Positions 3,595-27,947 of a stretch of DNA of 28,868 nt are shown here, one piece after another. A program made the position numbers and the translations under genes. Positions within the stretch are counted from its first letter, which is position 1. The number at the start of each line of letters is the position of its first letter. The notes below the pieces were generated by a model. The model was not told the DNA's origin. It was given only the letters and a program-made list of their open reading frames with translations, and did no database searches. The stretch comes from Macrostomum lignano (taxonomy: Eukaryota). The stretch lies in contig NIVC01004999.1 of assembly GCA_002269645.1 (NCBI GenBank), forward strand, positions 1 to 28,868. The letters run 5' to 3'.

Positions 3595-3619
3595 GTAAAA
3601 ATGTTGCTTGATGTTATAG

Positions 3620-4915: not shown

Positions 4916-4949
4916 TGTATGTTTGGTGTTGTCTGAAGCAACATTTAAC

Positions 4950-7187: not shown

Positions 7188-7571
7188 GAATATAACTTAC
7201 TACTCACAGTAGCAGGGACATCTTTTTCAAGAGCTTTGTCTAACTAATACTGGTATTCCGCGTAAAGTTTTTATTCTATAATGTATTACCTGTAATGTAT
7301 TTGTTTTTTGAAAAATATTCTTCCTGCAATAATGTTTAGTTAATTTGATCTGTAGAAGTACGAGTATAGCTCGTACTGAAGTTTAAATATATTACCTTTT
7401 TGACCAAATTGACCTGTTAAGCTGTCGGTTGAATATTTTAATAATTTTGTGCCAAAACTATAAGTTATAAAGTTATAAAGTTACTTAGCTACTTTTTTTT
7501 TAAACTTACCAATCTAAATTCAGGGTGCCAAATAAGGTGTTAATGAGATCTTATTCTCTTGCAAAGGTGCT

Positions 7572-8010
7572 AAATCAGGTGTCTAAGGGATCTAGTTGGC
7601 TCACCAAATCAGGTGTCTAAGGGATCTAGTTGGCTCACCAAATCAGGTGTCTAAGTGATCTAATTGGCTCACCAAATCAGGTGTCTATGGGATCTAATTG
7701 GCTCACCAAATCAGGTGTCTAAGTGATCTAATTGGCTCACCAAATCAGGTGTCTAAGTGATCTAATTGGCTCACCAAATCAGGTGTCTAAGTGATCTAAT
7801 TGGCTCACCAAATCAGGTGTCTATGGGATCTAATTGGCTCACCAAATCAGGTGTCTAAGGGATCTAATTGGCTCACCAAATCAGGTGTCTAAGGGATCTA
7901 GTTGGCTCACCAAATCAGGTGTCTAAGTGATCTAATTGGCTCACCAAATCAGGTGTCTATGGGATCTAATTGGCTGACACATATCAAATGTCTATGGGAT
8001 CTAATTAGCT
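7572..8010. repeat. 34 bp minisatellite (caaatcaggtgtctaagggatctaattggctcac), ~13 copies
   Basis: gtgtct at 7681 and 7715 (period 34). Confidence 0.95.
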
Positions 8011-9173: not shown

Positions 9174-10439
9174 ATGCCTCGCTATCTTGTGTCTCTAGCC
9201 CTGCCTCTGCTGCTTCTCAGCAGCTGCTGTTTGCACGGTGAATCTTCTTTGCCGAGCTATGTCGATTTTCTTCACGACTACAGCCGCACGTACGACTGTC
9301 GATGTCATACGGTTTCTTCGGAATACGACTTCTTGTGCGAGATCGTTAAAAAAGGATTAACGGCAGCAAATAGCAGCATCAGCTGCTCCAACCTGCCTAC
9401 AAAAGTGATTGCTCACCTAAACATCAGCTGCTCCGGTTGCAGCAACTGCGTCTCAGTGAACATGCACGAGATGACTCGAGCTCATTATGACGATGACCAG
9501 CAGATAAACTTTTATCCGCCGTCGGAGATTTCACTGAACGATTGTCGGGTCAACAGTCTCAATATTAGAATGATGCAGTTGAGAGCTGAGAATGTCAGCG
9601 TCACTGAAGGCATGGAGATAGCACAGTTCGGTGTGCCACAACATCCGGGTGTTGGTGGCTACTACACCGTGAATGTCACCTACCCGACTGATTTCAACGC
9701 GTCCGATTGTTGGCTGACTTACCTGCACATCAGACGGAGCAGTATGTGGTACTTGCCCGCCTATGTTCTACACAAATGCCAGTACATTCGTAGTGTAAGC
9801 ATCGTTGAGTCGCCGATCACGTGGGTATCGATGACTGACCTACTGGCCCTTCGGTCAATCGATAGCTTGACCCTGCGCAACTGCAGCGTGAGAACGTTTG
9901 CCGATGACGCTTTGTCGAAAGCGCTGACGGCTCTAGATGAATATCTGCAACGAGTTGGTCCGCAGCCAGTCACTGAGAATCCTCAAGTAGCAGAGGCTAT
10001 TAAACGACTGCGTAAGATGAGGCAGGACTCCGGCAAACTGAACTTGGTAATCAATCTGTACGACATGATGGACTCATTCAACATCAGCTTTTCGCTGCTA
10101 TTCGGCTACCGAACCATCAGCCTGGGCAGTGGCTTTTCTCCCTCCGACATTCCGTTCGACGTAGCTCTCAGTTACTTGAACTTGCAATACAATGAGCTGA
10201 CCGAGATCCCTTTTTCTATCAGCATGTTTGGCAATTTAAATGCAATTGACCTTAGTCACAACAAAATACGCAGGCTGTATCACAGCTGGCTGTGCTGGTA
10301 CCCTCCTATACGCGAGGAAGACAAGGCAAACTCTACCAGACACTGCTATTGGTTCAGAGGATCCAGGCAGACTCTGAAAGTGCTGAACCTTTCTTACAAT
10401 CGAATCAAACAAATTGGCGAAATTCAACCTTGGCACGGG
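9174..10439 (+). CDS. Toll-like receptor-like gene A, exon 1 (signal peptide, Cys-rich N-terminus, LRRs)
   Basis: Hydrophobic leader MPRYLVSLALPLLLLSSCC, and LRR motifs LSYLNLQYNELTEIP, LNAIDLSHNKIRRL, LKVLNLSYNRIKQI. Donor ggg|gtaagg at 10440 (phase 0). Confidence 0.9.
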
Positions 10440-10502
10440 GTAAGGTGCATTGAAAAAATATTATTCATATTTTCATTCGCAGGATGGCTGTAGGCACGTC
10501 TT

Positions 10503-10801
10503 CGGCGACATTGTCCCACAACCAACGCTGAGGCCATTCTGTTCATTCCACTGACTCCACAAGCGCTCCAATACTGTACGCAGGCACTCACTCATGCACT
10601 CGCTCACACAGGGTGTGAAGTGCACAAACCCCCCCCCCCCAACCATTTTTCGTGCACACAAGCCCCAAATGTATGAGGCCGCGCGCGGAATCGAACCAGG
10701 GGTCGTTGCGCGAGAGTCAGACGGGCTTACCGCTAGTTCTCTTGATAGCCTCGTATTGGGGTTTTATAATAAAACCTGTTGACAACCCACAATGTCTTTA
10801 A
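10503..10801. mobile_element. Short interspersed element (MITE-like ends) carrying a tRNA-derived Pol III head on the minus strand
   Basis: Minus strand 10750-10675 has an A-box-like TAGCGGTAAG and a B-box GGTTCGATTCC (10697-10687) with a broken acceptor stem. Ends are gacattgtc (10507-10515) and acaatgtct-ttaa (10789-10801). The left part is homologous to the element at 14417. Confidence 0.55.
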
Positions 10802-10926
10802 ACGGACATTGTTCTAAATTCTACTAGCTGTTTCTATCTTCTCGGATACCTTTAAATGACGCCGCGACAATTGTTCTAGTAAAAAAAGATACCCAGCAAG
10901 TTTAAAACCCAACTCGTCACATCTAG

Positions 10927-12405
10927 GTGGCACTGGCCGAGCTGTACCTGCAGAATAATTTTATTGTGAGCATCAATTCGGACGCATTCAGCTATTCGCT
11001 GCTGTCAAAGAGCCTGCTGGCGCTTAACCTCGACGACAACCAACTGCCCTACATTCATTTAAAGTGCTTGAGCCGCCTGGAGACTCTGAGCATTCGAAAT
11101 GGTGGCCTGGCAAATATCGAGCTCAGTTCCATTCCCCAGTCGGAAAGGCTTAGGTGGATCAATCTGACCAACAATTCAATCAGCTCGATTTCCTACAACG
11201 CTTTCAACAATCGTCCAGCCTTGGAGACAATAGATCTAAGGAACAATAGCTTAGAAAATATGTATGCATACAGCTTCAACATGTCGGAGCGTCCAACCTT
11301 AAGCTCTCGTGTTGTCTTGTTAATAAGCGGGCAAAAGGTTAAAACGGTCTGCAACTGCTATCACGTCTACGCTTACATAACAGAGGAAGAGACCGACTTG
11401 GAAAGGACTAACTACCACTATCCAGCGATCCCTAAGCACGAATTGGAAATTACGTCATGCCTATTCTTCTTGAAGGACGGTGCTAACTCAACTAGAAAAC
11501 TAAGTGGTGCATCGTACCGCGAGTTCTTATGTGCCTTCAGTGGCGACTATGAACAGAAATTACCGAAAAAATACTGCGAACAACCCCCACAATCTCAGTA
11601 TGCGTCGTACGCAAATGAACCAATCCCCATAACAGGCCTGACTAACAGCACGTTTGAGTGTTGGGAGACTTGCGTACCCGACTGCAGCTGCTACCACACG
11701 GCCAAGTGGGAGTTGTCCGACCTCAACTGTACCAATATTGATGTAAACATGGTCAGCATACTGCTGCGCATCCCTGTAAAGTACATGTACTTTTCCGGAA
11801 TCAGGGAGTCCGACTATTTCCACAGAATAACAAATTCCACACTGAAATGGGAAACACCAAAACTCCGCGATGCCTTAGTAGTTTTGTTTTTCAACAATAG
11901 CAACATTCGCTACATCGAAGAGAATGCGTTCGTAGATAAAACTTCGATAAAGTTTCTATACTTGGACGACAACAGGCTTGAAAAAGTACCGGCAAAAGCT
12001 TTCTGCTCACCGAATTCAGATCTGATTCGGCTAAGTCTATTGAGAAACAACCTAACTTGGATTGACCCCTATTTGTTAAATTCTAGCTGTCTTCCAAATT
12101 TAAACGAACTCAAGATCAGCAGCAATCCGTGGCACTGTCAGTGTAACGAAATGTGGACAAGTCTTCACAAATCTCTAATTAGTGTGGCGCGCACAACGCA
12201 AGTTGTCCCAGATTTCGAAAGTATGCGTTGCCAAGTGGATCCGGCAATTATTGAAGCCTGCGAATTGAACAGATGGAATGATGCCTGGCGACTTGATTGC
12301 CAAAAAATTCTTTTAAGCAATGGATCTCGCGACTATCCAGTGAGCGATGAGGGCGGACTCGTCAGGGTGTGCGAGCTTATAGCGGACTCGGCAGCACAGC
12401 AGTGA
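10927..12405 (+). CDS. TLR-like gene A, exon 2 up to an in-frame TGA (LRRs, LRRCT, LRRNT, LRRs, LRRCT)
   Basis: Acceptor catctag|gtg is phase 0. Multiple LxxLxLxxN repeats, an internal Cys cluster (CNCYH...CWETCVPDCSCYH...LNC) and a juxtamembrane NPWHCQC. TGA at 12403-12405. Confidence 0.9.
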   Translation: MALAELYLQNNFIVSINSDAFSYSLLSKSLLALNLDDNQLPYIHLKCLSRLETLSIRNGGLANIELSSIPQSERLRWINLTNNSISSISYNAFNNRPALETIDLRNNSLENMYAYSFNMSERPTLSSRVVLLISGQKVKTVCNCYHVYAYITEEETDLERTNYHYPAIPKHELEITSCLFFLKDGANSTRKLSGASYREFLCAFSGDYEQKLPKKYCEQPPQSQYASYANEPIPITGLTNSTFECWETCVPDCSCYHTAKWELSDLNCTNIDVNMVSILLRIPVKYMYFSGIRESDYFHRITNSTLKWETPKLRDALVVLFFNNSNIRYIEENAFVDKTSIKFLYLDDNRLEKVPAKAFCSPNSDLIRLSLLRNNLTWIDPYLLNSSCLPNLNELKISSNPWHCQCNEMWTSLHKSLISVARTTQVVPDFESMRCQVDPAIIEACELNRWNDAWRLDCQKILLSNGSRDYPVSDEGGLVRVCELIADSAAQQ

Positions 12406-13231
12406 AGGCAGATCGTCCTGATCATTCTGTCCTCATTATTCGGTCTCGCGCTGCTCGGTTTCGCGGTGCTCGCTGTCCGCCGTCGACACCGACTGCTGGC
12501 CGTGGTTCGAGTCCTCATCCTCCTCAAGTACCAGAGCAGTCGGCGACTGCAGCAGCAGACATCTCGGGACTCGCTGCCGTACGACGCGATGCTGTGGGCG
12601 TCGGACAGAGACCAGGACTGTCTGGTCGACGTGCTGAACTGCGTGCGCAGCGCCTCGGGCGGAGACGAGCTCGAGCTGTGCGTTCCGGAGAGCTTCCTCT
12701 ACTCGGACCTGTGCTCCTGTCCGCTCACCTACTTTGACTGTCCGGCTGAGGGAGCCAAGTTCAGCGGCAAGGTGGTGGTGGCTTTGTCCGAGAGGTTTCT
12801 CGACACCCAGTACCTGGCTCTGTGTCAGGTGATTCGAGATCTCGACAGCTTAGGTCGGAATCCGTTCAAGGACATCGTGTTTCTGCGCCTGAGCTCGCGC
12901 AGAGTGTCGCTTCAGCGCCAGAGACAGCTCGGACCTGAGGACGTGGAGGCGTTCCACACTCTGCAGAGAATCCTCGCAGGGAGCGACATCGAATACAAGT
13001 CCGTTGACTGGGAATACAGACTCATCGAGCGCATTCGGAACCGAGATCCGGCCGCCGTTCTCGTGTTTGACTCGTCTGTTCCGCCAGAGACTTCAGCGGC
13101 GGCCACGCCCGCGGTAGCTGACCGCCTTGATATTACCGTCGGGACCGCATCGGAGCCTGAAGAGCTATTAGACCTTCCAGGCGAGGGGCAGCCATTAATT
13201 GTGGACGTTGAGCAGACAATAGATTTTATAA
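12406..13231 (+). CDS. TLR-like gene A, exon 2 continuation beyond the premature stop (TM helix, TIR-like domain 1)
   Basis: Same frame as 10927. RQIVLIILSSLFGLALLGFAVLAVRRRHR is a TM with a basic stop-transfer; PYDAMLWASDRD is box-1-like; KVVVALSERFL. Donor a|gtaagt at 13232 (phase 1). Translated only if the stop is read through, absent in vivo, or bypassed. Confidence 0.7.
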
Positions 13232-13339
13232 GTAAGTACACAAATTATTGCGGCACTGTTCTGAAATCGGCTTCAAAACGATGAGCTCGGAATTTCCACC
13301 ATTACCCGTATAATATATTATCATATAACCAATATAAAG

Positions 13340-13752
13340 GAAGCCGCACCATCCTGAGCACGATTCGGGACTGGCCGCCGTTCCACTCGGACAAAGTGCC
13401 GGAGGTCTTCATCCTGTCTGCTCCTGAGTCCGCCTCTGACTCCGAGTCCCGAGCCGACCCAGATTCGAGCTCGAACACCGTCGTCGAGCTCATCGTTCGT
13501 CGCCTCCAAGGCGTTCGGCTCGGCACCAACGACGCGGCCCTGACTGCTCGCTGGCCTGACAACTTCGAGGGCGCCTCGCCAGCCGGCCGCATCAACAGCT
13601 TCCTGATGAAGCGAACTCGCCAGTTCGTGCTGCTGCTCAGCAACGGCCTGCTCAGTTGGCTCAGAGACGAGGCCGAGCTGCAGTGCGAGTTCCAAGCCTT
13701 CCTCGCTGCGAACTCGTTCAGACGCCGCCTGCTGGTAGTTCAGGTTGGACAG
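13340..13752 (+). CDS. TLR-like gene A, exon 3 (second TIR-like domain)
   Basis: Acceptor tataaag|ga is phase 1. EVFILSA...VVELIVRRLQGVRL...DNFEGASPAGRINSFLMKRTRQFVLLLSNGLLSWLRDE..CEFQAF...RRLLVV follows TIR secondary-structure order. Donor cag|gtgaga at 13753. Confidence 0.7.
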
Positions 13753-13857
13753 GTGAGACTCTCGCAATCAGCTGAGTGTGCAGGTCTGAGTTTTGAGTAG
13801 CTTTGCCTCACTGCTGTGTGAGTGAGACATACAGTATCGATCTTTATTCACTCGCAG

Positions 13858-14016
13858 GTGGACAGCCGGTCGAGAGCTCGCTACCGGGCGCTGGCGAATC
13901 AGCGACTGGACGGCGGGGAGTCCGGGCCGGCGACGAACTGGTTCGACATGAGCGCCGAGGACCGCAACGTCGAGGCACTGGGGCTGTGGCTGGATGGCGT
14001 GCTGTACAAGAAGTGA
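13858..14016 (+). CDS. TLR-like gene A, terminal exon
   Basis: Acceptor attcactcgcag|gtg is phase 0. It reads VDSRSRARYRALANQRL...LGLWLDGVLYKK* and is conserved in paralog B. Confidence 0.7.
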   Translation: MDSRSRARYRALANQRLDGGESGPATNWFDMSAEDRNVEALGLWLDGVLYKK

Positions 14017-14416
14017 CTCCTGAGCATGAAACTTTGATGAAGCGCACGAAAAAATTGATAGACAGTAAGAATGTTATCCCAGTTCGACATGTAGAATTTA
14101 AATATTGAAAAATTAAAAGTGCAATAAATTGCAACCGAACATCACTTTTTCATCGTAAAGATCCACCTTAAAAATATACAACATGTGAATTCGAGTGGTT
14201 GCTTCACGTCGACTAAGAGCCACTGGCCGAAAAGAAGAAAGTGCTGGGACTTCCTGCTGAACACAGGCAAAGAGCCGCAAGGCCGCTATCACCCTGGAAG
14301 GAAACCGTTAGCCATCAGATTACTCCTTGGTCAAGCGTCCATCAGCACTGACCTACTGTACACTGGGACCTTATTGTGTTAGTTATAGGCAGGGGCTGTG
14401 TGTACCCTGACGCACT

Positions 14417-14830
14417 TTAAGCGACATTGTCACACAACCGGCGAGAGTCATTACTGCCCATTTCGCCGATTCCCCTGAGCAGGCATACAAGCTCGCGGAT
14501 GCGCACGCAGTCATACGCACAGGCACACACTCACACAGGAGTGCACAGCAGCCCTAACTTCATTTATTGTTAGGCATGTACACTTCACTATGCCTTGTGA
14601 GTTGGCCCTCAATGACGTTAATTACACGAGCAGAGCCAAGCCGAAATTCCAATTTAGCTCCAAAAATGTGACTGCACTTGTGAATCGAGACTGGGCTGCT
14701 GGCACTGCCAGGACCTCAGCGCCAATGAAGCTGCTCAGCAAGTCCTCCCGCCATCACGCCAATCACGGAACAAAAAGATACCCTTTGAAGTGCGCCTTGC
14801 ATAGTGAAAACAGGCGACAATGTCTCTTAA
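14417..14830. mobile_element. TTAA-bounded MITE-like element related to the one at 10503-10801
   Basis: ttaagcgacattgtc (14417-14431) and gacaatgtctcttaa (14816-14830) are 14/15 inverted repeats. It shares gcgacattgtc.cacaacc and ctcacacagg..agtgcaca with the 10503 element. Confidence 0.5.
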
Positions 14831-15049
14831 GCTATCATCCTGAAAGTGCACAAAGTGCATGACATTTGCAAGGGGTCTTGGATGCAACAGTCCCGGCCGT
14901 TAAATGTGTTAAATTGGGTTTCCAATTAAAAGGAGCAATGAACTGACCTACCAACTAGTGTCTCTTTGTTGTCAATATCGAAGTAATAGCCTATTAAAAG
15001 GACAATGATGCAACTGGGGATCGCACGTCCTTCTTTACTAACTCATTCA

Positions 15050-15695
15050 AGCAATCCCCAGACTAACCTTCAAGCAATCCCCAGACTAACCTTCAAGCGA
15101 TCCACAGACTAGCCTTCAAGCGATCCACAGACTAACCTTCAAGCGATCCCCAGACTAACCTTCAAGCGAGCCCCAGACTAACTTTCAACCAATCCACAGA
15201 CTATCAAGCGATCCCCAGACTAACCTTCAAGCAATCCCCAGACTAACCTTCAAGCGAGCCCCAGCCTAACCTTCAACCAATCCACAGACTAGCCTTCAAG
15301 CGATCCCCAGACTAACCTTCAAGCAATCCCCAGACTAACCTTCAAGCAATCCCCAGACTAACCTTCAAGCAATCCCCAGACTAACCTTCAAGCAATCCCC
15401 AGACTAACATTCAAGCGAGCCCCAGACTAACCTTCAAGCGATCCCCAGACTAACCTTCAAGCAATCCCCAGAATAACCTTCAAGCAATCCCCAGACTAAC
15501 CTTCAAGCAATCCCCAGACTAACCTTCAAGCAATCCCAGAATAACCTTCAAGCAATCCCCAGACTAACCTTCAAGCAATCCCAGACTAACCTTCAAGCGA
15601 TCCCCAGACTAACCTTCAAGTGATCCCCAGACTAGCCTTCAAGTGATCCCTACACTAACTAACCTTCAAGCGATCCACAGACTAACCTTCAAGCG
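15050..15695. repeat. 23 bp minisatellite (caagcaatccccagactaacctt), ~28 copies
   Basis: Direct tandem units with small variants (gcga/gcaa, ccac/cccc). Confidence 0.95.
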
Positions 15696-18231
15696 AATCG
15701 GAGTTGATTAAACGCTCATAAGAGCAAAGCGTGACTATGTCAGGGGCAGATGAAAGCTGGTACATGTAGCTCGTAGATGCAGCTATATCAAGTATCACAA
15801 AGTCAAAGGTTAGTGTTGGCGCCAGCGTTCTTGATAGCTATAGCTTTTAAACTTCGTTTTACAACCTAAATCTGACAAATCTGACAATAAATTAATCGGT
15901 GGTAATTACGACATATGAAATTTTAAATATTTTAAAGTCTGGGGATTGCTTGAATGAGTTAGTGAAGGAAGGACGTGCGATCCCCAGTTGCATCATTGTC
16001 CCTTTAATCGGCTTTAAACCAACTGTTTTTACGATTGCACGATGCAAACTTTGTTTTAGATTGTTTTCGCTATCAACCCGTTTGTATTGCTAAAGTCTAT
16101 GCATTTGCCAGCAAGGATAGAGCCTGTGTCAGTTCGGAATTTCAACCTTTGCCAACCGGTTTGTTGTCAGCCTTCTCTCATGACACAAAAAACTGCAGAA
16201 ATTTTTCTCTCTTCGACTGGATACTATCCGAAAAATAGTTGCATACTAGATGACAAAAATAGTTTAGAAGAAAGCATCTATGCTTCCTAACCCTCGTTTT
16301 GCAGTATGTTAATAAAAAAGTGTTCTGAAAACGCCACTAGCTGTACGATATTATGAAGCAGAATGTATGCGCACGAGCTGTGCAGACACAAGAAACGGCT
16401 GAAAGTTCCTTTTTTGTTTTTTATTTAAATCTACCCTGTCTGCAGGGTACTGGCAGACTGGCCAGTACCCTAGGAAGGAAACTGGCAGGGGGTATACTCG
16501 TATTATACTGCAATTGTCTCTTAGACTGCACTGTCTATATATAATTTTCAACCATTATAGAACTAGCATAATAAGAATATGTAATTACATGTACTTGTAT
16601 TCGGATTGGCTCTTCTCCAACTGCTGCATGAACTCGATATGCATGTAAAATCTGAGATGGAGTTTAAATCTGACCTGCTAAATTCAAGCCTGATATTGTA
16701 ATGGACATTATGTATCCTGTGCGACAACATTATCACAATATAAGTTAATTTAGTGCTTCAATTATGCTAGCACGACTCAGCGGGTATGATGTTGCCCCAG
16801 GCGTCAGGTCACTTGCGCGGGTGATAAGCATGCAGCCCATAATCAAACGAAGCTTGCTTTCTGGTTCACAAGGACAGGTAGTGCTGCTGGAAGAAGACTT
16901 CAGCCTCATCAGGCATTGTGGTGAAGGGCGTTGTCCGCGCAGAATAGGGAATCTAGCTACTGCTTCAGATACTCTAACGGCCTCGTTGCTCCCTGGATGT
17001 GTGCAAATGTATTTAGTACATGTTGAAGGCCCAAGTTCTCTCTGTGAAGTGTCTGCATTGTTCTCCGTTGATGAACATTGCAGCTTGAGATCCAGGCTCT
17101 ATGTACGAGTTGGACATAGCCAACAAGAAGATTCAAGTCCATTTAGACTTAACTTGTACATGTACGTCATTCTCGCGTGACACCACGGCATGGTTGTACA
17201 TATTTTTCATCAAGTTGTACCTCGTTAGGATTTCGTCAGATGTCGCAGACTCAGTGGAGTGGTTCGATGGCTTAATTCTGTAGATGCTATTACGGTCGTA
17301 CTCTTGATTCCAAAAGTAAGTAGACCACGATTTATCGTTCAATATCTGTAATGTTTATTAGCTAAATACAGCTTTTCATAGTCTTCTATTGGCTATCGAA
17401 TGTACAATAGATCTGCATCTGCGCCAGAAATATTTAATGACGCTAGCTACAAACTGTTCGATTGTTGACCTGCCCGAGACCTACTGAGCTGTTTTTGCCA
17501 TCGCTCAGGCTGCAGCTATTTTTGCGTAGAACGCTTGTTTTTTCAGGAAATTGTCTACGGAGCAGTAGGAGCAGTAATTGTGCGTACATATTCGAGCAGG
17601 GTTTTTTTAAGACGAGCCTGTCCTCCGCAGGCACGCAATGACTGTACAGTTCCGTGCATGCACAAGAGAGATTAATAGCTAGTGTCTGTCGTGATGTGCT
17701 CAGGTGTGCTCAGGTTTATTATATAGGCTCTCCAACGCATTGCTACGCATACTTAATGATAAATAATATGCAGGAAAGCGAAAAATAAATTCTGCAATAA
17801 GTGTCTGCTATACGAGTAATTAACTTTTTCCAGGTAAGTACGAGTATTTTGTCTGAAACGTTTGGATAGATAAGCGAACAGAAAAATATTTAATCTTGAA
17901 ACATGCCTCGTTTAGTGTTTTCCTTAGCATGATGCAGCTATGCAAATTGTCAAGTCAAGAATCTTCCCGCTTGGTCATTACTTATTATCCATATGCTGAC
18001 GGCTTTTGATGGTTAGTGAAACGGTTTTTACAAGCTCAAAATTTGAAATCGTCGAAAAAGTGTTGCTAAGCTAGCTCCAAGATTCGAGACTTCGATGTTG
18101 TTTCTTCGATTTGATGTTTCGATGTTGTCAAAAATTTTGTCTGGAATGATGTGAAATTCATGTCTACCCGACAATTGACTGCCACAGATTGACTGCCAAC
18201 CCTAACTTAAAAGCAAGCCAAAATTGGCACT

Positions 18232-18430
18232 GGCAGCCAAATGTCACTGACAGTCAAATGTCACTGACAGTCAAATGTCACTGACAGTCAAATGTCACTG
18301 ACAGTCAAATGTCACTGACAGTCAAATGTCACTGACAGTCAAATGTCACTGACAGTCAAATGTCACTGACAGTCAAATGTCACTGACAGTCAAATGTCAC
18401 TGACAGTCAAATGTCACTGACAGTCAAATG
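18232..18430. repeat. 17 bp minisatellite (cagtcaaatgtcactga), ~11 copies
   Basis: cagtc at 18251 and 18268 (period 17); near-perfect units. Confidence 0.96.
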
Positions 18431-19229
18431 ACGATGTTCCGTGAAATTTCGAGCTTGTGAAAGATTTCAAATTCTTGTGATTCCGAAACTTGTGTGGAGG
18501 GCAAAACATCGAGATAACTTTACTTTATGCGACTTAAGCTTGAATGAAAACATTTAATAAAAATGAAACATATAATTTTAATACTGTTAACAAGGACCAC
18601 TGTAGTAGAAGGACTCGGCACTCACGAACCATGGAAAAAGTTTTGAAGGCTGATTTTTAAAGTTTGATGCTGTCTCTTCAGAAACAGATATTAAGATGAT
18701 GAGTTTGCATCCCTACTGCTCATTTGTCTGCCTGTTGCTTTCTTCTGTGATGCATTTGGAGTTCGCAGTAGGCGATTAACTATTTCCAGGTGAATATTAG
18801 AGCAGCAGGTACTTAGCCCCTATAACACAGTATCCATATCTGTACATACTGCCTGTACAGATGTTACAGACATACGCGTGGTAAATTTTGAAAAATCATT
18901 AAGGTTTATAAGCAAATTTTAAAACAATTATGGCATTGTACGAGATAGATGTCTCGTAGTTGAAAAGTCTTACGTTTAATTAGTCTGTGGTACTGGGTAG
19001 CCATTTATTGGAAATAGCTAAGTGTACTAGAAAAAATTGACAGTAAAATGCATGAAAATGAGCAAAGCAGAAATAAAAGGCAAAATGTGAGATCAGTAGA
19101 AACTTGGTATCAAAAATGCGACATTCTGGAAAACAAACATAAATTGACTGAACTCTGAAACAATGCAGAAAAGGTAACTGTAAGGCTATTTATAACTAAT
19201 ACGGTAACACAATAATCATCTTTCTAAAT

Positions 19230-19488
19230 CTGACTAAATTGCTAAATTAGGAATTGCACACCAACAAATAGATTGTGGCTGTACTGACACGGTGTGGAAT
19301 TTCATTTTACTGGTGCGGAAGCCAGTGAGGAGGGGAGTGAGGGGATGGTGGGAAGGAAGGTTGAGAGTAGTAGTGTAGAGTGAGGGGATAGTTAGGAGGG
19401 GAAATGTTACCTGACTGCGCGCGTGCAACTATGTTGATGAAATGAAAACAGGTCGAACGGACCAAACTAATAAATAAATAATAATAAA
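19230..19488 (+). mobile_element. Possible 3' UTR remnant of a non-LTR retrotransposon
   Basis: A purine-rich tract, then a small hairpin ggtc-gaacg-gacc followed by the tail aaactaataaataaataataataaa. Confidence 0.3.
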
Positions 19489-20217
19489 TGGATTAAGAGC
19501 TGAGCTTAGCATCAAACTCAAATTCCTTCAATCTGTAGTGCATAGATATAGTCTACAGATACAGCAAATTTAAGTACTTAAGTACTTATTAAAATTTTCA
19601 CAGAATATTATAATGAGTTGTAAATATTTCCTATCACTACATATAGGCCCTAGTTGTGTTGAACTGCAATTGTTTAGGCTAGGCTATGTTTAGTTGAGAG
19701 AACTAGGACTACAATCATTACAATCAACACAACTTATTAAACCATTAATTTCCAATAAGCAATAAACTGAAGAGATACAAGTTATTTATAAAGCAAAATT
19801 GCATTATACTTAGTGATCTAGGTCAATTAATAGAGTATTCTAAGCTAACATCTGGCTGATTATAGTTCTGGTTTCATTCTGACAAATCAAAACATTAGTT
19901 TTGTTGGTACTAAGCAATAACATTCAATACACGATTATTACAATGCTGTGAAATATAATTAAACCCTCAAAACGCATACAAAGTTTGAATATGGCTACAT
20001 ATTATTGGCTTAGTGAAGAAAGCGAGTAGCAGAGAATTAAAAAATATGGTCGCACAAACAGACACAAAGCGTACGGAAAATCAGCCTTCAATTTTTTTCC
20101 GTGGTTCGTGAGTGCCGAGTCCTTCTACTACAGTGGTCCTTGATCAAAAACACACAAAAAATGACTGTTAACTTCTCCTTCGATTTACAATACCTTGTCA
20201 TAGTACACAGCCAAGCG

Positions 20218-21528
20218 ATGCAAGCACCGACAGAAAGTCTCATACTGCTACTGGCGTGCACTCTGACGGCGCTCCTGCCGGCTGCTGCAGCTGCTCAGCC
20301 TCAGTTGGATGACGATCTGAACAAATACATTCTACTGCCGAAAAACTTCAGTCTAACGCACGAGTGCTGCTGCGAGAACATGATGAACTCGCCCAGGTTT
20401 GACTACTTCTGCCAGGTGTCTGAAAAACCCTACCCGAATGCCAGCTGCATGACTGGTCTGGTAGACTGCTCCGATCTGCCGGGCAGAATCGTGTACAGCT
20501 TGACGATAAACTGTACATCTTACCCATCTGTGACTGTCAATCTGCGAGCTCTCACCGTGGCTCACAACTCAAGCAGCATCGAGAACAAAATCAGCTATCC
20601 GCCACAGCTGGTACATCTAGTGAACTGCAACGTAAACGGTTTCGAAGTTGGAATCCTTGAGCTGCCAGCTGAAAATGTCTCCCTCGATTACGGCATGGAA
20701 GTTGCACCGTTTGGAAGTCCGGATAGGCCGGGCGTTGGCGGTTACTACACTGTTAACGTCACTTATCCGCGTGAATTCCGCCAGGCTGACTGTTGGATGG
20801 TGGAATTGAACATTGAAAATGCAAGCACTCTTTGGTATCTGCCGTCCTACCTGTGTCACAAGTGCAACTCGCTCAAGAACATCTTTATATCTAATTCGTC
20901 AATCGAATGGATCTCGATTCGCGATGTTCTCTCTTTGCATAACGTACGAAGTTTTTCTCTGACCCACAGCCGCCTAAAGTACTTTGCAAGCGACGCTCTG
21001 AGCACAGCTATCAATCTATTAGATAGATACCTGGAAGCTGGAGTGCAAACCGGCTGCATCAATGACACTGAAGCCGCGATCAAAGCTCTAAACTCAATAC
21101 GCAGCCGCACAGGACGGTTGAGTAGCCCCACCCAGCTATACGACACGATGGACACCGCCAATATCGACTTCACCATGCTATTTGGCTACAGATTGAGAAG
21201 CGCTTTCTCGGGCAATAAAACCGAGCCCGCCTGCGACATGCCTGGCAAGATGGCCCTAACCGATCTCGATTTGTCTTTCAACGCTTTGACGGATATACCT
21301 TTCTCAATTAGCATGTTCGATCAGCTGAACCGGGTCAATCTTAGCCACAACAGAATCCGCAGTTTGTACCACGGCTGGATGTGCTGGTATCCGCCAATTC
21401 CCGAAGACCAGAAGAACACTTCAAACCGGCACTGCTATTGGTTCAGAGCGGCTCGAGCTAGTCTGAAGGTCCTGGACTTGTCATTTAACGAAATCAATAT
21501 GATCGGAGAGATACAGCCTTGGCACCAG
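20218..21528 (+). CDS. Toll-like receptor-like gene B, exon 1
   Basis: Leader MQAPTESLILLLACTLTALLPAAAAA. It is colinear with gene A exon 1 (shared PGVGGYYTVNVTYP, IPFSISMF, CWYPPI, HCYWFR, IGEIQPWH). Donor cag|gtgagc at 21529 (phase 0). Confidence 0.9.
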
Positions 21529-22370
21529 GTGAGCTAATTATTAATACTAAATTGTTGGTTATCATTATACAAAGCAATTGAAAGGGAGTCATTGAAGTTT
21601 GGGTTGGTTGTGGCCGTTTCAAGACCCCGCATTCGTAAAGTGTTGGAACACGATGACACTGATATCGCTCACTCTGCGATCCTATCGATATGAGTAATAG
21701 TCGAACCGGTCGATAAATTGAACCTTCGCAGTAATCAGACACCGTTTTATGGCTCAATTATCTTTTCATTTAGCTCTTAGCCGACTACGTAAAAAATTGT
21801 TACAGAATGATCAAACAGATTTTTAGAAACCCATGAGTCGGGCTGTGTCATTTTAATGGTTTTAAGCAAATACTCATTTAAGTAAAAAAGATATAAGCAA
21901 AACAATTTTTGTCTCGAAAAAAGGAAAAAAGTGTTTTTCCCTACTTTTTTCGGTTAATTCTGCCGTCTAATATTTTCAAAGAAACGCAATTGCTTCCCCA
22001 CACTTGGCTGGGCCGTGTCTGTCTACGGTTAAATGCTTTTTCATTTCCTTGGCCAGGCCAAAGAAATGATTGGCTAGGCCAAAGAAATGAGCTCTCAGCT
22101 GGAGAATTCGGCCCAGAGAAGGGAAGAAGCGGAAAGTAAAGCTCTAAACCAAACTGACTGCAATCGATAGCTTTTCGGGCCGGTGGACTAGAAACGCCGA
22201 GACATCTTATCCAGGTTTTTGCATGGGGCTTCCAGTTGATAAAATGAGGATTTCAGGTTAACATCAGTCTCTAGAATGAAGCTTTGCTGTGGGCTCCAAT
22301 CATATGCATGTTTAACTTGAAAAAAATCAGTTAGTTAAGTGTCTCAAAGAATTTTAATATGATTTTTCAG

Positions 22371-24569
22371 AAAAAAATGTTTTCTTAAATTCACCTCTCG
22401 GCTTAGCGTTGCTGAATTTATATCTGGATGAAAATCTTTTGTCGTATTTTCACCTGGAATGCCTGACCCGACTGGAAGTCCTGAGTCTCGAGGGCTGTCG
22501 AATCGCGAATATCGAGCAGGAATCGCTGCCCAAGTCGAAATCGCTCAGGGAAATCAATCTCGATAGCAACAGAATTTTCGCCATCGCTCCGGGCGTTTTT
22601 GAACAGCTTGAAAAGCTTGAGTTTGTTCGGCTACATCATAACAGGCTGATGCACTTTTATGCGAACAGTTTCAAAACGCCCCCAAGATCGACCTTGGCGT
22701 CCAGAGTCATCATACACATTGCCAACCAGAGCGATATACCCATATGCGACTGCAGCCACGTATATAAGAAGATACTGCAGGATGAGGAGTTTGGAAATCC
22801 CCAAAAAAGCTACGTTTATCCGAGGATTTTGCCAGAAGATATGTCCACCGAGTGCCAGTTCTTCTCCAGATTCAGCTCAACCAGAGTGGTAAAGAAACTA
22901 AGCGAATCAAATCAAAGTGAGTTTCTATGTGAATTCCAGGACAATCAAAAGCACAAGCTGCCCTGGAATTACTGTAACGAAAACGTCACTATTATGGGTC
23001 GAGAAAAGTGCTTTGTGAAGTGCATCTACGGCTGCCGGTGTTACCACGATGACGGATGGGATATTTCTGACCTGGACTGCACCCCGGGCAATTCCACAGT
23101 CACCACCGACCTGGTTAAGATGCGATTCGAATTCCCAATCAAGTACATGTTCATGGCCGGACTTAAGGACTCGGAGTTCTTCCGGCACGTCTCCAAGGGA
23201 TCATTTAAATGGTTGAACGAAAGCGATTCAAATGAATTACTGTTCTTGCAGCTGAATAATAGCAACGTCAAATATGTTGAGAAAGATGCGTTCGCAAATT
23301 TTGAGAACATAGTTGTTATTTACCTGCACGACAACAATATTACCAGCATTAATCCGAGCCCTTTTATTGGAAACTGCTTTTTAAATAAAAATCTAAACCA
23401 GATCACGCTGCATAACAACAGAATGAACTACATCGACCCGGCAATAATTAATGGAACGTGTCCTGTGGGCCTTTCAGGTGTGAGCTTAAGCGGCAATCCG
23501 TGGCACTGCTCCTGCCATGGAAAATGGATCGAGCTCCACAAAACACTCATCCAGGACTCTAGAAAAACACAAACAGTATCGGACTTCCGAAATATGTATT
23601 GCACAATTGACGCGTCTATAGTTGGTGCATGCACGGAGAACCGTGAAAATCTGCAATGGAGTGACGTATGCCAAAATGCAAATGATACGGCTAATTACCC
23701 AGTTGCCGACGAAGGCAGACTTGTCAAAGTTTGCGAGCTCATAGCGGACTCGGCAGTGCAGCAGCGAAGGCAGATCGTCCGGATGATTCTAACCTCAGTA
23801 TTCGGTCTCGCGCTGCTCGGTGTCGCGATGCTCGCCGTCCGCCGTCGACACCGACTGCTGGCCGTGGTTCGAGTCCTCATCCTCCTCAAGTACCAGAGCA
23901 GTCGGCGACTGCAGCAGCAGGCATCTCGGGACTCGCTGCCGTACGACGCGATGCTGTGGGCGTCGGACAGAGACCAGGACTGTCTGGTCGACGTGCTGAA
24001 CTGCGTGCGCAGCGCCTCGGGCGGAGACGAGCTCGAGCTGTGCGTTCCGGAGAGCTTCCTCTACTCGGACCTGTGCTCCTGTCCACTCACCTACTTTGAC
24101 TGTCCGGCTGAGGGAGCCAAGTTCAGCGGCAAGGTGGTGGTGGCTTTGTCCGAGAGGTTTCTCGACACCCAGTACCTGGCTCTGTGTCAGGTGATTCGAG
24201 AGCTCGACAGCTTAGGTCGGAATCCGTTCAAGGACATCGTGTTTCTGCGCCTGAGCTCGCGCAGAGTGTCGCTTCAGCGCCAGAGACAGCTCGGACCTGA
24301 GGACGTGGAGGCGTTCCACACTCTGCAGAGAATCCTCGCAGAGAGCGACATCGAATACAAGTCCGTGGACTGGGAGTACAGACTCATCGAGCGCATTCGG
24401 AACCGAGATCCGGCCGCTGTTCTCCTGTTGGACCGAACAGCGGAACTGGAGTTACCGACGGCAGCTGCTGGCGGTTCGGAAAGACCAGCCGCTACAGCAA
24501 CTGCGGAGCTTCCTGATCTTCCTGACGATGAGCAGGCGCTGATTGTCGACGTTGAGCAGCCAGTTACGA
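22371..24569 (+). CDS. TLR-like gene B, exon 2 (LRRs, Cys clusters, TM, TIR-like domain 1); 5' boundary uncertain
   Basis: The frame is open from 22358 through ORF 22409-24598. Homology to gene A starts at EKNVF after the acceptor tttttcag (22370). NPWHCSC, TM IVRMILTSVFGLALLGVAMLAV, YDAMLWAS. Donor a|gtaagt at 24570 (phase 1). Confidence 0.85.
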
Positions 24570-24792
24570 GTAAGTATAACTGCCAGAGCTTTTTGTAGTC
24601 TCACTTGCCCCTTTAGTTGTTAATTTCGTTCCGAAAATTAAACTCTGATACGCAACTCTAGAGTACTACACGTAGCTCGTACATTGAGTTGAATTAGACA
24701 TTTTCTTATCTCGAGAAACTCATGATGCATCTAAAGAAACAATTTTTATTTGTAAAGCTCCAAGCTAACGTTTTAATCAACATATTCAAAAG

Positions 24793-25211
24793 TTCGAGCC
24801 GCCGCCGCTCCCGGTGCGGCTGTCAGTGACTGGCCACCGTTCCACTCGGACAAAGTGCCGGAGGTCTTCATCCTGTCTGCTCCTGAGTCCGCCTCTGACT
24901 CCGAGTCCCGAGCCGACCCAGATTCGAGCTCAAACACCGTCGTCGAGCTCATCGTTCGTCGCCTCCAAGGCGTTCGGCTCGGCACCAATGACGCGGCCCT
25001 GGCTGCTCGCTGGCCTGACAACTTCGAGGGCGCCTCGCCAGCCGGCCGCATCAACAGCTTCCTGATGAAGCGAACTCGCCAGTTCGTGCTGCTGCTCAGC
25101 AACGGCCTGCTCAGTTGGCTCAGAGACGAGGCCGAGCTGCAGTGCGAGTTCCAAGCCTTCCTCGCTGCGAACTCGTTCAGACGCCGCCTGCTGGTAGTTC
25201 AGGTTGGACAG
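24793..25211 (+). CDS. TLR-like gene B, exon 3 (second TIR-like domain)
   Basis: Acceptor aaaag|tt is phase 1. From 24828 it is nearly identical to gene A exon 3. Donor cag|gtgaga at 25212. Confidence 0.7.
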
Positions 25212-25252
25212 GTGAGACTGAGTGAGCAGGTGTGAGTTTTGAGTAGCTTTGC

Positions 25253-25424
25253 CTCACTGCTGTGTGAGTGAGACAGCTCTCCCTCACTGCTGTGTGTGAG
25301 TGAGACAGCTCTCCCTCCCTGCTGTGTGAGTGAGACAGCTCTCTCTCACTGCTTTGTGAGTGAGACAGCTCTCCCTCACTGCTGTGTGAGTGAGACAGCT
25401 CTCCCTCACTGCTGTTTGAGTGAG
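25253..25424. repeat. 30 bp intronic minisatellite (ctcactgctgtgtgagtgagacagctctcc), 5 full copies plus 1 partial
   Basis: Units start at 25253, 25283, 25315, 25345, 25375 and 25405. Confidence 0.93.
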
Positions 25425-25447
25425 TATCGATCTTTATTCACTCGCAG

Positions 25448-25621
25448 GTGGACAGCCGGTCGAGAGCTCGCTACCGGGCGCTGGCGAATCAGCGATTGGA
25501 CGGCGGGGAGTCCGGGTCGGCGACGAACTGGTACGACATGAGCGCCGAGGACTGCGACGTCGAGGCGCTGGGGTTGTGGCTGGACGGAGTGCTGTACAAA
25601 AAGGCTGATTTACGTAAATAA
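25448..25621 (+). CDS. TLR-like gene B, terminal exon
   Basis: Acceptor ctcgcag|gtg. It reads VDSRSRARYRALANQRL...LGLWLDGVLYKKADLRK*, with TAA at 25619-25621. Confidence 0.7.
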   Translation: MDSRSRARYRALANQRLDGGESGSATNWYDMSAEDCDVEALGLWLDGVLYKKADLRK

Positions 25622-26329
25622 TATTTAATTTTAAATTGGACATCCATGGCACATTTTGACTTGAATAGCTCGTACACTCTAAGAAACTAGAAAACGTAGA
25701 CTTAAATTCTGAAGTGTCATATAGACAATTTATATGTACTTATCCGTATATGGTATACGTACTTTAGTTGTTGAGGATTCAAACCTAGGCTACTATTAGT
25801 AGCTAGTATAAATCTTCTCCACGAAGAAGTAGAAGAATTTATGCAGCGAATCTGTGCCATAGACCTATTTTTCGTATTTTGTACTTTATTTCCAGCTTTT
25901 TGACAGCGGTTTCTGGCAGACGTATCCGGAAGACGTTTGTCTTACTGTTTATTTGGTCGTGAGCTTTTTGGTCTTTTCGATTTCTTCATCGTGCGCCTAT
26001 TTTTGTTTTGGAAAAAATCTTTAATCTTTTTTTAAGTTTTAATGCCTTCAGGTTGTTGCTGTCTTATTGTAGAGATCATCACTCGAAAACTTTTATAGCG
26101 AGCGTGTGAATTGGTTATAATTTTCTGGTAACTCTGCCATTTTTTTTCTTAGCTAAAGTACTAATCTTAGTTAGCTTAAAAATATGTACTTCCCTAAATT
26201 TTTAAATATCTGTATTAACAGAGTGTTTTTCATCGTTATCTATCGACAAATTATCCAAAAAGGTCGTGAGAACTTTTAACTTACGCCTGTGTACTTCTGA
26301 ATGATACATGCAGCATATGAAGGAAGGTC

Positions 26330-26939
26330 TCAGTAGTCTATGGCTCTGAGCTGGCAGAGATTCTCGGACCTGAAAACGTCGGAGAGGTCCGCGTTTGGGC
26401 CGAGGTAGGTGAGCCTGTCCGTAGGTGAGCCTGTCCGTAGGTGAGCCTGTCCGTAGGTGAGCCTGTCCGTAGGTGAGCCTGTCCGTAGGTGAGCCTGTCC
26501 GTAGGTGAGCCTGTCCGTAGGTGAGCCTGTCCGTAGGTGAGCCTGTCCGTAGGTGAGCCTGTCCGTAGGTGAGCCTGTCCGTAGGTGAGCCTGTCCGTAG
26601 GTGAGCCTGTCCGTAGGTGAGCCTGTCCGTAGCTGAGCCTGTCCGTAGGTGAGCCTGTCCGTAGGTGAGCCTGTCCGTAGGTGAGCCTGTCCGTAGGTGC
26701 GCATGTCCGTAGGTGAGCCTGGGGCGTTCACAGATGAAGTGCTCCGCATTCTCAACACCGGAGAGGCAGAATGGGCATTCCTCATTGCAGATTTTCCTCT
26801 TGAGGTAACAACCGTGACCCGAGAGAGTCATGGTCACCGCCCTGATGTCCCTGCGGTTGAGTCCAAGTAGGGCCCCTCGAAGGGCGGTGGTAAGACAGGG
26901 GCCAGCCGCAGGCATTGCCGGTAGTCTGTGGCGTTAGAG
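26330..26939 (-). mobile_element. 3' end of ORF2 of an RNase H-containing non-LTR retrotransposon (Cys/His knuckle region), interrupted by a 16 bp array
   Basis: LLGLNRRDIRAVTMTLSGHG...CPFCLSGVENAEHFICERP, resuming after the array as RLTYLGPNADLS. This is the C-terminal motif typical of I/R1/LOA-group LINEs. Confidence 0.8.
26405..26720. repeat. 16 bp minisatellite (gtaggtgagcctgtcc), ~19 copies
   Basis: gtaggt at 26405 and 26421 (period 16); nearly perfect. Confidence 0.96.
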
Positions 26940-27128
26940 GCATGCAATAGTGGGCTCAGCACCAGGCTTACGAGCTACGGTCTGCGATCCTACACACCTG
27001 CACCCCCCCCCTTTATTCATGGTGCAGGAATGGCAGGAGAACTCTCTCCAAGCTGACTCACAAGCCGACCCAGGGGTTCACGTTCCGCATGTGTTCAAGG
27101 CAGCTCTAGGGCTGCTGGACTGACTGGG
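26940..27128 (+). ncRNA. HDV/CPEB3-like self-cleaving ribozyme candidate
   Basis: P1 GCATGC (26940-45)/GCATGT (27087-92) with G1.U wobble; P2 CCCAG (27069-73)/CTGGG (27124-28); P3 GGG/TCC; L3 TTCACGT, identical to the CPEB3 L3; J1/4 GT; P4 hairpin 27095-27119; J4/2 CTGA. Confidence 0.65.
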
Positions 27129-27947
27129 CTCCGGCGGTGGCAACCCATCCGTGGGCTTGGCCGCTTTGGGTACGGGCTCCGCCCGGAAGTGAACCTGTGC
27201 GTATCAGGTACCTCTGGCCACGGCTCTGAGGAACAGGTATCACCCTCTGACCTTAACAGGCTATGCGGCCAGTCCGCAGGCTCCGGGGACAGCCTTTTGT
27301 TCCCTCAAGGGCCCAGTGTACCACCGTGCTGATGCTCTTTTGGTTTGGCCTCTGGTTTTTCCAAGCCGGGCTCTTAGCCGGGGAGTTTCTCGGTTGCTAG
27401 CGGTCGGGCCGGTAAGGGCTTAAGCTACCCCCCGATCGCTACCTCTTGGCCTGGCTGTTGGGTTTGGGGTCACGGCGCAGCGTCTTCTCATCTCTAGCCC
27501 CCACTCGCCTTTCAGCGACTCATGGAGTATTCATTTACCTCCGCCACGTCCGAGGCTGCTGGAGCACCAAACAAGGTTGGTACCGGGCTTAGCCGGACAT
27601 TCGCAACACCGGAACCTTGGGTGACTCTTAGTCAGCCCCTTCCGCCACTCAGGACAATACCGAAGTAGCTGGACAACAGGACGGCGGACCTCAGACCTCT
27701 AAAAAGAAGGCCCGTAGCATTGCTCGCTACAAAGCTTTTCTCCAGCCCAAAGCGGAGGAACGGAGGAGTGCGAAAGCCGCCTCTCCGGCCACCTCTGAGG
27801 AGGGTGCCGGTAACTCTGCGAATCTCGGAGAGAGGAGCCGACATCCGACAAGGCCCCTCCCGTGGTGGGACCTCTGCCCGTGTGGAAACTCCCACGGCCG
27901 CGGAGAGATCCAAAGCGGGGGACGCTGGCCAACTCTCCGGAGGAGCA
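26940..27947 (+). mobile_element. Inserted fragment resembling the 5' end (5' UTR plus degenerate ORF1 N-terminus) of a LINE, antisense to the host LINE
   Basis: It begins with a ribozyme-like fold. Frameshifted basic, low-complexity coding from ~27522 (MEYSFTS... / QTSKKKARSIARYKAFLQPKAEERRSAKA). Flanked by gca at 26940-26942 and 27945-27947; removing it rejoins the host ORF2 in frame. Confidence 0.55.

Follow-up and report, generated by a model that had tools for sequence, protein, structure and literature searches.

Gene conversion between Toll-like receptor (TLR) genes is known for TLR1 and TLR6 in mammals (Kruithof et al., 2007; PMC2077338), and vertebrate cases in the TLR1 family, including avian TLR1A/B and TLR2A/B, have been reviewed (PMC3125219). 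In TLR1/6, independent and repeated conversion preserves near identity over a block that runs from LRR16-19 across the C-terminal cap and membrane span to include most of the TIR domain; in the published interpretation, common partners are retained while ligand binding diversifies (PMC2077338). In bivalves, mccTLRs carrying two TIR domains (SPP-2TIR) have been described (Saco et al., 2023; PMC10279657). TLRs have been reported by two surveys to be absent from Platyhelminthes, including Macrostomum lignano (PMC8609888; PMC10279657).

A pair of M. lignano genes, located in a 28,868-nt stretch of genomic DNA that was analysed as a whole (the window), probably adds a new example to the known phenomenon of TLR1/TLR6-type conversion. 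As in TLR1/TLR6, tandem paralogues, here of putative LRR-TM-TIR type, combine a diverged N-terminal sensor with a near-identical C-terminal part. Unlike in TLR1/TLR6, where it begins in the last LRRs, the converted region begins within the membrane span and is split in two by an unconverted linker and intron. Other differences are that the signalling domains are barely recognizable as TIR, that the host is a flatworm and that one copy has a premature stop.

The overall architecture resembles that of protostome P-type/mcc Tolls (arthropod Toll-6/7-like, e.g., P0003): a signal peptide, LRR blocks and an internal LRRCT are followed by a cysteine cluster (C..C...C.CYH...W....C), further LRRs, a terminal LRRCT (NPWHCxC), one membrane span and a cytoplasmic domain opening with a YDA/FDV motif. 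However, this cytoplasmic domain fails every curated TIR model, and the M. lignano genes add a domain of ~130 residues and a tail; their identity to real Tolls is about 21-24%, in the ectodomain only. Like the bivalve SPP-2TIR receptors, they join an mcc-type ectodomain to two successive intracellular globular domains, but the bivalve TIRs cluster together, as internal duplicates would, whereas M. lignano domain 2 has no detectable similarity to domain 1 or TIR.

Gene models and receptor architecture

Copy 1, a Toll-like receptor gene at 9174-14016, was delimited using ORFs, directly read splice sites, Pfam LRR matches and the partial UniRef model P0014; copy 2, its tandem paralogue at 20218-25621, was delimited using ORFs, splice sites and the M. 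lignano protein UniRef A0A1I8HBV3 (P0001). Both of these linked paralogues, and all features described below, are on the + strand; the gene starts are 11.0 kb apart, with copy 2 11.4 kb downstream. The exons of copy 1 are 9174-10439, 10927-13231, 13340-13752 and 13858-14016, and those of copy 2 are 20218-21528, about 22371/22376-24569, 24793-25211 and 25448-25621; intron 2, as defined by its splice sites, occupies 13232-13339 and 24570-24792, respectively. P0014 is 99-100% identical to copy 1 and supports the exon 1/exon 2 junction, and P0001 matches copy 2 exon 2 at 100% from LLNLYL onward; P0001 also contains the sequence of the spliced cytoplasmic protein, which comprises 465 aa. Copy 1 encodes, in order, an LRR ectodomain, a membrane span, domain 1, the linker, domain 2 and a tail.

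The ectodomain has Pfam LRR_8/LRR_4 matches and can be aligned colinearly with that of P0003, a Toll in which Pfam detects a TIR domain, the CxC-YH-W cluster and NPWHCxC included; the extracellular LRRs bear the cysteine-cluster caps that characterize the Toll type. A single transmembrane segment is predicted, consisting of hydrophobic IVRMILTSVFGLALLGVAMLAV followed by RRRHR, and AlphaFold models this stretch as a helix with pLDDT dropping from 94 to 78 along it. In this family, a single membrane span joins a Toll-type LRR ectodomain to a cytoplasmic part made up of two domains.

The initial annotation named the two cytoplasmic domains TIR1 and TIR2, but these labels are not established. No Pfam TIR was detected in copy 1, copy 2 or P0001, and domain 1 of a third paralogue, P0007, matched Pfam TIR with an E of 0.11 (12.7 bits), below the cut-off of 21.3. 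A PDB profile search with domain 1 yielded no TIR, and PDB sequences searched by phmmer/hmmsearch with either domain gave chance matches only. Alignment of domain 1 with TIR profiles by hhalign gave probabilities of 74% and 84% and brought box 1 and the S..VVV.LS..FL motif into register with TIR, and UniRef labels these proteins 'TIR domain-containing'. Domain 1 is probably a TIR, though a very divergent one. Domain 2 gave hhalign probabilities of 7.8% and 2% with TIR, and domain 1 aligned with domain 2 at 0.1%, so a second TIR related to the first, as in a twin-TIR receptor, was not found. Searches of Pfam, PDB and Foldseek with domain 2 returned nothing (best Foldseek E not below 0.39). Structure modelling and representative searches used exon-wise translations; AlphaFold gave a pLDDT of 43 for domain 1 from a single sequence, which is unusable, and of 46 for domain 2 from a 3-row alignment. 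The beta-alpha pattern of domain 2 fits a TIR-like fold but does not count as evidence for one.

Near-identical tracts within diverged genes

Self-BLAST of the whole window, used for long-range similarities, returned four copy 1/copy 2 pairs and no others: 10198-10444 versus 21287-21533 (69% identity), 12334-13071 versus 23696-24433 (95.7%, gapless), 13369-13829 versus 24828-25275 (95.9%, a single 13-nt indel) and 13799-14013 versus 25397-25603 (90%). Within them lie two tracts of near identity, their offsets ranging from 11362 to 11459 nt. Tract 1 (12475-13055 versus 23837-24417, fixed offset 11362) takes in the last part of the membrane span, the juxtamembrane segment and domain 1 in full, and differs at 6 of 581 nt (12559, 12723, 12840, 12980, 13005 and 13014), with a seventh mismatch just outside at 13056. 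Tract 2 (13369-13758 versus 24828-25217) differs at 4 of 390 nt and covers domain 2 from 29 nt into exon 3 and runs 6 nt into the last intron. Divergence is thereby near-equal in the two tracts (1.03-1.04%). The initial annotation had counted seven differences in ~590 nt between 12481-13072 and 23843-24424, and about four between 13368-13758 and 24828-25217; both counts agree with ours, and only the copy 2 end of the first stretch, given as 24424, should be placed at about 24417-24433. Against ~55% background identity, such matches would arise by chance with probabilities of ~1e-138 (tract 1) and ~1e-91 (tract 2), by which chance identity can be regarded as excluded.

Outside the tracts, identity is about 50% or the copies are unalignable, and the flanks share no similarity. 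At the protein level, the ectodomains are 46% identical across exon 1 and 39% across the part encoded by exon 2; an earlier estimate by eye was roughly 35-45%. Upstream of tract 1, a 5' intermediate zone (12334-12474 versus 23696-23836; about 89% identical without gaps, about 11% divergent) takes in the last part of the ectodomain stalk together with most of the membrane span, and is interpreted as what is left of an earlier and broader tract. Downstream of tract 2, a 3' intermediate zone (13759-14013 versus 25218-25603; 90-94%) comprises the last intron and the tail exon; the latter is about 6% divergent, and the stop codon is the limit of similarity. The last-intron flanks are common to both copies, as first annotated (13753-13857/25212-25447), and enclose a 30-nt minisatellite located some 30-45 nt beyond the 3' end of tract 2 (13758/25217), with 5.9 units in copy 2 (25245-25424) and a single unit in copy 1 (about 13803-13832). 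Between the tracts, an unconverted island (13056-13368 versus 24418-24827) consists of the linker, intron 2 and the first 29 nt of exon 3. The linkers are 31-38% identical in protein and, consistent with the earlier description of this region as largely unalignable, only the ...DLP..LIVDVEQ motif and the GTAAGT donor can be aligned (77% over 48 nt).

Synonymous divergence is not uniform along the genes, uniformity being the pattern named beforehand as incompatible with conversion. It is very low in tract 1 (dS 0.029, dN 0.007) and tract 2 (dS 0.032, dN 0.003), intermediate in the membrane-span zone (dS 0.39) and the tail exon (dS 0.15), and about 1.5 in the linker; the ectodomains are saturated (pS 0.78-0.81). 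Along a single gene, values span about 50-fold or more. The in-tract differences are 4 nonsynonymous and 7 synonymous; this bias to synonymous change (P = 0.007) indicates that the intracellular module has recently been under constraint. All are substitutions, mostly transitions, with no coding indels, and they look more like true mutations than like long-read errors. GC3 is 0.77-0.88 in the tracts, 0.55-0.60 in the ectodomain and 0.80 in P0007. As a signature of GC-biased conversion the rise does not discriminate; it is non-specific and equal in P0007, for which the 10-kb flanks examined contain no tandem partner. A reading in which an overlapping antisense gene imposes the selection was rejected, as antisense ORFs are expected by chance in G+C-rich DNA and the domains are only ~32-34% identical in protein to P0007.

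The third paralogue provides a measure of rate. P0007 shows 30-34% identity to each of the copies whether the ectodomain, domain 1 or domain 2 is compared, indicating that the cytoplasmic domains do not evolve more slowly than the ectodomain and that constraint does not account for the tracts; under uniform divergence, a copy-to-copy identity of about 40-46% would be expected, versus 99% observed. No phylogenetic incongruence with P0007 was found, the copies being nearest to each other in every domain, so that the rate argument alone remains. The P0007 locus is duplicated in the public assembly with 98-99.2% identity between its copies; the tract divergence of ~1% equals this value, indicating that the last event was recent. 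Only P0007/P0009, about 32% identical, was found as a further family member. An exhaustive HMMER search with domain 1 against 1.8 billion representatives returned only P0001, P0007 and P0008, the last rejected as a repeat-protein artefact. Only two sequences bear the tracts, and protein searches retrieved no orthologue or further close paralogue.

Probable gene conversion and its alternatives

Patchy, probably repeated ectopic gene conversion between old tandem paralogues is the best explanation of this pattern, and we hold it with considerable confidence. It is supported by the linkage of the paralogues, by bounded tracts of ~99% identity set in diverged sequence and by the extension of tract 2 into an intron. 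The duplication itself is old, because the synonymous sites of the ectodomains are saturated and introns and flanks are unalignable. P0001 reproduces the mosaic of copy 2 exactly, with its own ectodomain, domain 1 and its own linker; this protein-level confirmation concerns copy 2, as P0014, the model for copy 1, ends within the ectodomain. The history first proposed, an old duplication followed by recent domain-restricted conversion, is supported by the contrast in dS, but the TIR labels and the adaptive reading attached to it fare less well.

After the old duplication, sequence would have been copied non-reciprocally between the genes in at least two patches, probably more than once. Domain 1 (12475-13055) and domain 2 (13369-13758) would form the youngest layer, for which a single discontinuous event is as possible as two that followed each other closely; the membrane span and the tail exon, with divergences of about 11% and about 6%, respectively, would represent an older layer, and the linker and intron 2 between the patches would never have been converted. 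We infer conversion as the mechanism, its recurrence, and that tracts stop where homology has decayed, namely in the indel-rich linker/intron and in the minisatellite-bearing intron. The functional effect would be two different ectodomains sharing a common intracellular module, as in TLR1/TLR6.

Movement of the 3' half by unequal crossover, partial duplication or exon shuffling, with the linker and intron 2 replaced later, e.g., from a third paralogue, would accommodate the equal tract divergence (1.03%, 1.04%) as a single event across 12475-13758, and the abundant minisatellites could promote such rearrangement. However, similarity is lost at the stop codon and does not reach upstream of 12334, which argues against unequal crossover or recent segmental duplication since these carry flanks, and neither the 3' flank nor intergenic DNA has the similarity that a crossover product would need. 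This route is unlikely: the diverged island demands an extra event, linker identity is near that of the ectodomain, as if never exchanged, and no third donor is present among the protein search matches.

An assembly or polishing artefact, in which multi-mapped-read consensus or partial collapse homogenized domains 1 and 2 that truly differ more, is less probable still. Read mis-assignment is plausible given the near-identical duplicate loci in the public M. lignano assembly, the copy 1 cytoplasmic exons lack independent confirmation, and the TGA at 12403 and the A7 run at the copy 2 exon 2 acceptor are possible sequence errors; multi-mapping short-read polishing might also sharpen a similarity already present. 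Yet polishing is unable to turn roughly 50% identity into 99%, so that the tracts must have been very similar beforehand; ten substitutions, mostly transitions and without indels, still separate the copies, the tract edges are graded rather than abrupt, and the independent model P0001 is identical for the copy 2 mosaic. Very strong purifying selection since the old duplication, acting on synonymous sites as well and with no transfer between the copies, is highly improbable, although the synonymous bias points to a constrained protein and the tract limits lie near domain limits rather than exon limits. A dS of 0.03 beside saturated dS is unlike protein-level selection, and the tract includes intron sequence; moreover, these domains share only 32-34% identity with P0007, which is no higher than in the ectodomain, and those of copy 1 lie downstream of a stop codon.

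Apparent lesions in this haplotype, and flatworm receptors

Copy 1 contains an in-frame TGA at 12403-12405, one codon ahead of the membrane span, where copy 2 has CGA (23765-23767); an intron removing this TGA was rejected, there being no usable donor and acceptor pair. Copy 2 lacks the exon 2 start that is present in P0001, its exon 1 is not spliceable in frame to the best acceptor, and an A7 run lies at the exon 2 acceptor. Because P0001 departs from the window both in exon 1 and where exon 2 begins, it stems from a different assembly or haplotype. In the present haplotype, copy 1 at least has the look of a recent null allele. The proposal that different sensors are plugged into an identical output module is weakened here by the copy 1 TGA and the unspliceable exon 1 of copy 2, and draws some support from the synonymous bias and recent constraint of the module. 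As a mechanism, conversion alone does not demonstrate design.

The genes look like Toll-type receptors in a phylum reported to be without TLRs. They may belong to a true flatworm TLR lineage that was missed by the surveys, its TIR having diverged beyond Pfam-type models and a second signalling domain having been gained, with the module kept uniform behind differently tuned ectodomains by recurrent patchy conversion; we put this forward tentatively, as somewhat less than an even prospect. If confirmed, the locus would extend domain-restricted concerted evolution of innate immune receptors beyond vertebrate TLR1/6 and TLR2 to a distant spiralian, with two patches around an unconverted island that marks the points at which tracts end. 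It further highlights LRR-TM-(cryptic TIR) genes in M. lignano, a genetically manipulable species.

Two paralogous genes and their state in the window

Two paralogous Toll-like genes, copy 1 and copy 2, lie in tandem in the window, both on the + strand. Gene models were built from ORFs, splice sites visible in the sequence and UniRef models. The exons of copy 1 are at 9174–10439, 10927–13231, 13340–13752 and 13858–14016, and those of copy 2 at 20218–21528, ~22371/22376–24569, 24793–25211 and 25448–25621. In both genes, exon 1 encodes the signal peptide and LRRs, exon 2 encodes LRRs, the membrane span, cytoplasmic domain 1 and the linker, exon 3 encodes domain 2, and exon 4 encodes the tail. 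Copy 1 is partly covered by UniRef model A0A1I8F6C6 (P0014). UniRef A0A1I8HBV3 (P0001; 'TIR domain-containing protein', M. lignano) is 100% identical to copy 2 exon 2 from LLNLYL onward. As exon 1 (20218–21528) differs from P0001 at 7 residues and the start of exon 2 differs too, with the remainder of exon 2 being identical, P0001 derives from another haplotype or a duplicate locus. The identity switch point between P0001 and copy 2 is located near the intron 1/exon 2 boundary. A word-indexed protein search using the cytoplasmic region, capped at 8000 candidates and so able to miss even exact matches, gave no match, though P0001 in that database contains domain 1 and the linker exactly.

Each copy carries an apparent lesion in the window. 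Copy 1 has an in-frame TGA at 12403–12405, where copy 2 has CGA (23765–23767; a CpG transition). This TGA, one codon ahead of the membrane span, is the sole lesion in an otherwise open frame, and could indicate that copy 1 has only very recently become a pseudogene or null allele, that it encodes a secreted form of the ectodomain, or that the base is wrong. The ~20 codons that open exon 2 in P0001 (VALSYLILRGNRIMSVN...; one LRR) are absent from copy 2 (region 21529–22410). Joining the conserved phase 0 exon 1 donor of copy 2 (21528) to its only strong acceptor, at 22371, would break the reading frame; this acceptor reads TTTTTCAG before the boundary and A7 (22371–22377) after it. In-frame alternatives are poor sites inside exon 2, and a run longer by one A would bring the exons back into frame. 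The lesions of both copies may reflect true null alleles or errors of single bases in the assembly. In either case, the haplotype in the window does not demonstrate the initial annotation's proposal of different sensors sharing one output module.

The window is rich in minisatellites, with very dense arrays at 24–8010, 15037–15699, 18228–18430 and 26405–26721 (periods of 4, 16, 17, 18, 21, 23, 34, 35 and 53 nt). Upstream of copy 1, most of the 9 kb consists of such arrays, which also occupy parts of the intergenic DNA. Decayed retroelement-like ORFs are present on the minus strand at 26202–28509; one has a weak, sub-threshold match to the RNase H end (E 0.009), and another includes a C..C....H....C motif and is partly a 16-nt tandem repeat.

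Identity and divergence along the copies

Whole-window self-comparison detects only four long-range similarities, every one between copy 1 and copy 2. In the domain 1 tract (12475–13055 versus 23837–24417), there are six mismatches at a fixed offset of 11362, and 13056 is the seventh; in the domain 2 tract (13369–13758 versus 24828–25217), there are four. Relative to ~55% background identity, the chance probabilities are ~1e-138 and ~1e-91, respectively. Both flanks of the last intron are common to the copies, surrounding a 30-nt minisatellite which has one unit in copy 1 and approximately six in copy 2. In 60-nt windows, identity is ~50% or the sequences are unalignable upstream of 12334, within 13056–13368 and past the stop codons. 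The initial annotation had counted 7 differences in ~590 nt and about 4 in the second pair, and had noted the shared intron flanks; these figures agree with the present counts, apart from one end coordinate that was off by 10 nt.

Codon alignment of the two copies analyzed by the Nei–Gojobori method indicates that dS is far from uniform along the genes, contrary to the uniform dS that would have refuted the reading of the initial annotation. Values are dS 0.029 and dN 0.007 in the domain 1 tract, and dS 0.032 and dN 0.003 in the domain 2 tract, compared with dS ~1.5 and dN 0.518 in the linker and saturation in the ectodomain (pS 0.78–0.81; dN 0.51–0.59). Intermediate values are found in the stalk end and membrane span (12334–12474; dS 0.39, dN 0.117) and in the tail exon (dS 0.15, dN 0.036).

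Origin of the near-identical tracts

With domain 1 as the query, exhaustive HMMER searching revealed one further family member, P0007 (PAA67356.1, BOX15_Mlig015932g1, M. lignano), which has the same architecture as copies 1 and 2. The position of the linker/domain 2 intron is conserved between P0007 and the window genes. In P0007, domain 1 is interrupted after about residue 960 by an intron (13139–13226 of its locus L001) that is absent from the window genes, and domain 2 continues into the tail without an intron (L001 14445–15035).

Constraint alone might be thought to keep the tracts nearly identical, as the eleven within-tract differences lean synonymous (4 nonsynonymous, 7 synonymous; P = 0.007 versus neutrality), and purifying selection has therefore acted on the cytoplasmic module after the most recent exchange. 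However, constraint as the sole cause is rejected: P0007 is 30–34% identical to either copy, whichever of the ectodomain, domain 1 or domain 2 is compared, the tract takes in intron sequence, and a stop codon precedes the cytoplasmic exons of copy 1. In this family, the cytoplasmic domains evolve no slower than the ectodomain. Unequal crossover or recent partial duplication is also argued against, because the 3' flank would come along and the linker and intron 2 would not stay at ectodomain-like divergence. Short-tract ectopic gene conversion fits the pattern, because the tracts are bounded, their flanks lack similarity, an unconverted island lies between them, the edges are graded, and the paralogues are linked on the same strand. 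Homology is poor at the tract ends, which fall in the linker and intron 2, both rich in indels, and close to the last-intron minisatellite, as predicted for a homology-dependent process.

GC3 is 0.77–0.88 in the tracts, 0.55–0.60 in the ectodomain and 0.48–0.52 in the linker. The raised tract GC3 was set aside as evidence for conversion, because a like contrast is seen in P0007, for which the 10-kb flanks examined contain no tandem partner.

The three divergence levels, ~1% (tracts), ~6% (tail) and ~11% (membrane span), suggest repeated conversion events differing in extent. The two young tracts are equally divergent (1.03% and 1.04%) and might derive from one discontinuous event or two events. 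The P0007 locus is present twice in GCA_002269645.1 (L001 and L002), with common neighbours (XPG-like, PH-domain and MFS transporter genes), 98–99.2% nucleotide identity and 4/1357 differing residues; these are duplicated loci or unmerged haplotypes. As the two P0007 loci diverge about as much as the tracts (~1%), the last exchange is about as recent as the split of duplicated loci or haplotypes in the M. lignano genome.

Nature of the domains and relation to known Toll-like receptors

The ectodomain is colinear with that of P0003, a P-type Toll carrying a Pfam TIR, including the internal cysteine cluster and the terminal NPWHCxC cap. Both cytoplasmic domains had been termed TIR in the initial annotation. 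For domain 1, Pfam TIR has no match in copy 1, copy 2 or P0001 and a sub-threshold match in P0007 (E 0.11), and a domain 1 profile finds no TIR in PDB, where a three-sequence TIR control profile finds TIRs at E 4e-29. As hhalign gives 74% and 84% probability against TIR profiles, with box 1 (YDA/FDV) and the S..VVV.LS..FL strand-helix motif both in register, domain 1 is a probable, very divergent TIR. The TIR label for domain 2 is unproven: its hhalign probabilities are 7.8% and 2% with TIR profiles and 0.1% with domain 1. Foldseek with a domain 2 model found nothing; AlphaFold models of domains 1 and 2 were too poor for use.

Two surveys reported that TLRs are absent from M. lignano or Platyhelminthes (PMC8609888, PMC10279657). 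M. lignano genes that combine a Toll-type LRR ectodomain with a membrane span and a cryptic TIR are located at 9174–14016 and 20218–25621 in the window and at L001 10001–15038, and UniRef already labels family proteins 'TIR domain-containing protein' or 'Protein toll'. Both surveys reportedly required a recognisable TIR domain, and this requirement would explain how the family went unnoticed; Pfam TIR models miss domain 1.

In many mammals, the tandem paralogues TLR1 and TLR6 have independently undergone conversion of their C-terminal part, membrane span and TIR included, and the rationale proposed for it is the same as that put forward for the M. lignano pair (PMC2077338). Similar conversions are seen more widely among vertebrate TLR1 family members (PMC3125219). 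The M. lignano pair is a probable new example of TLR1/TLR6-type conversion in a distant phylum.
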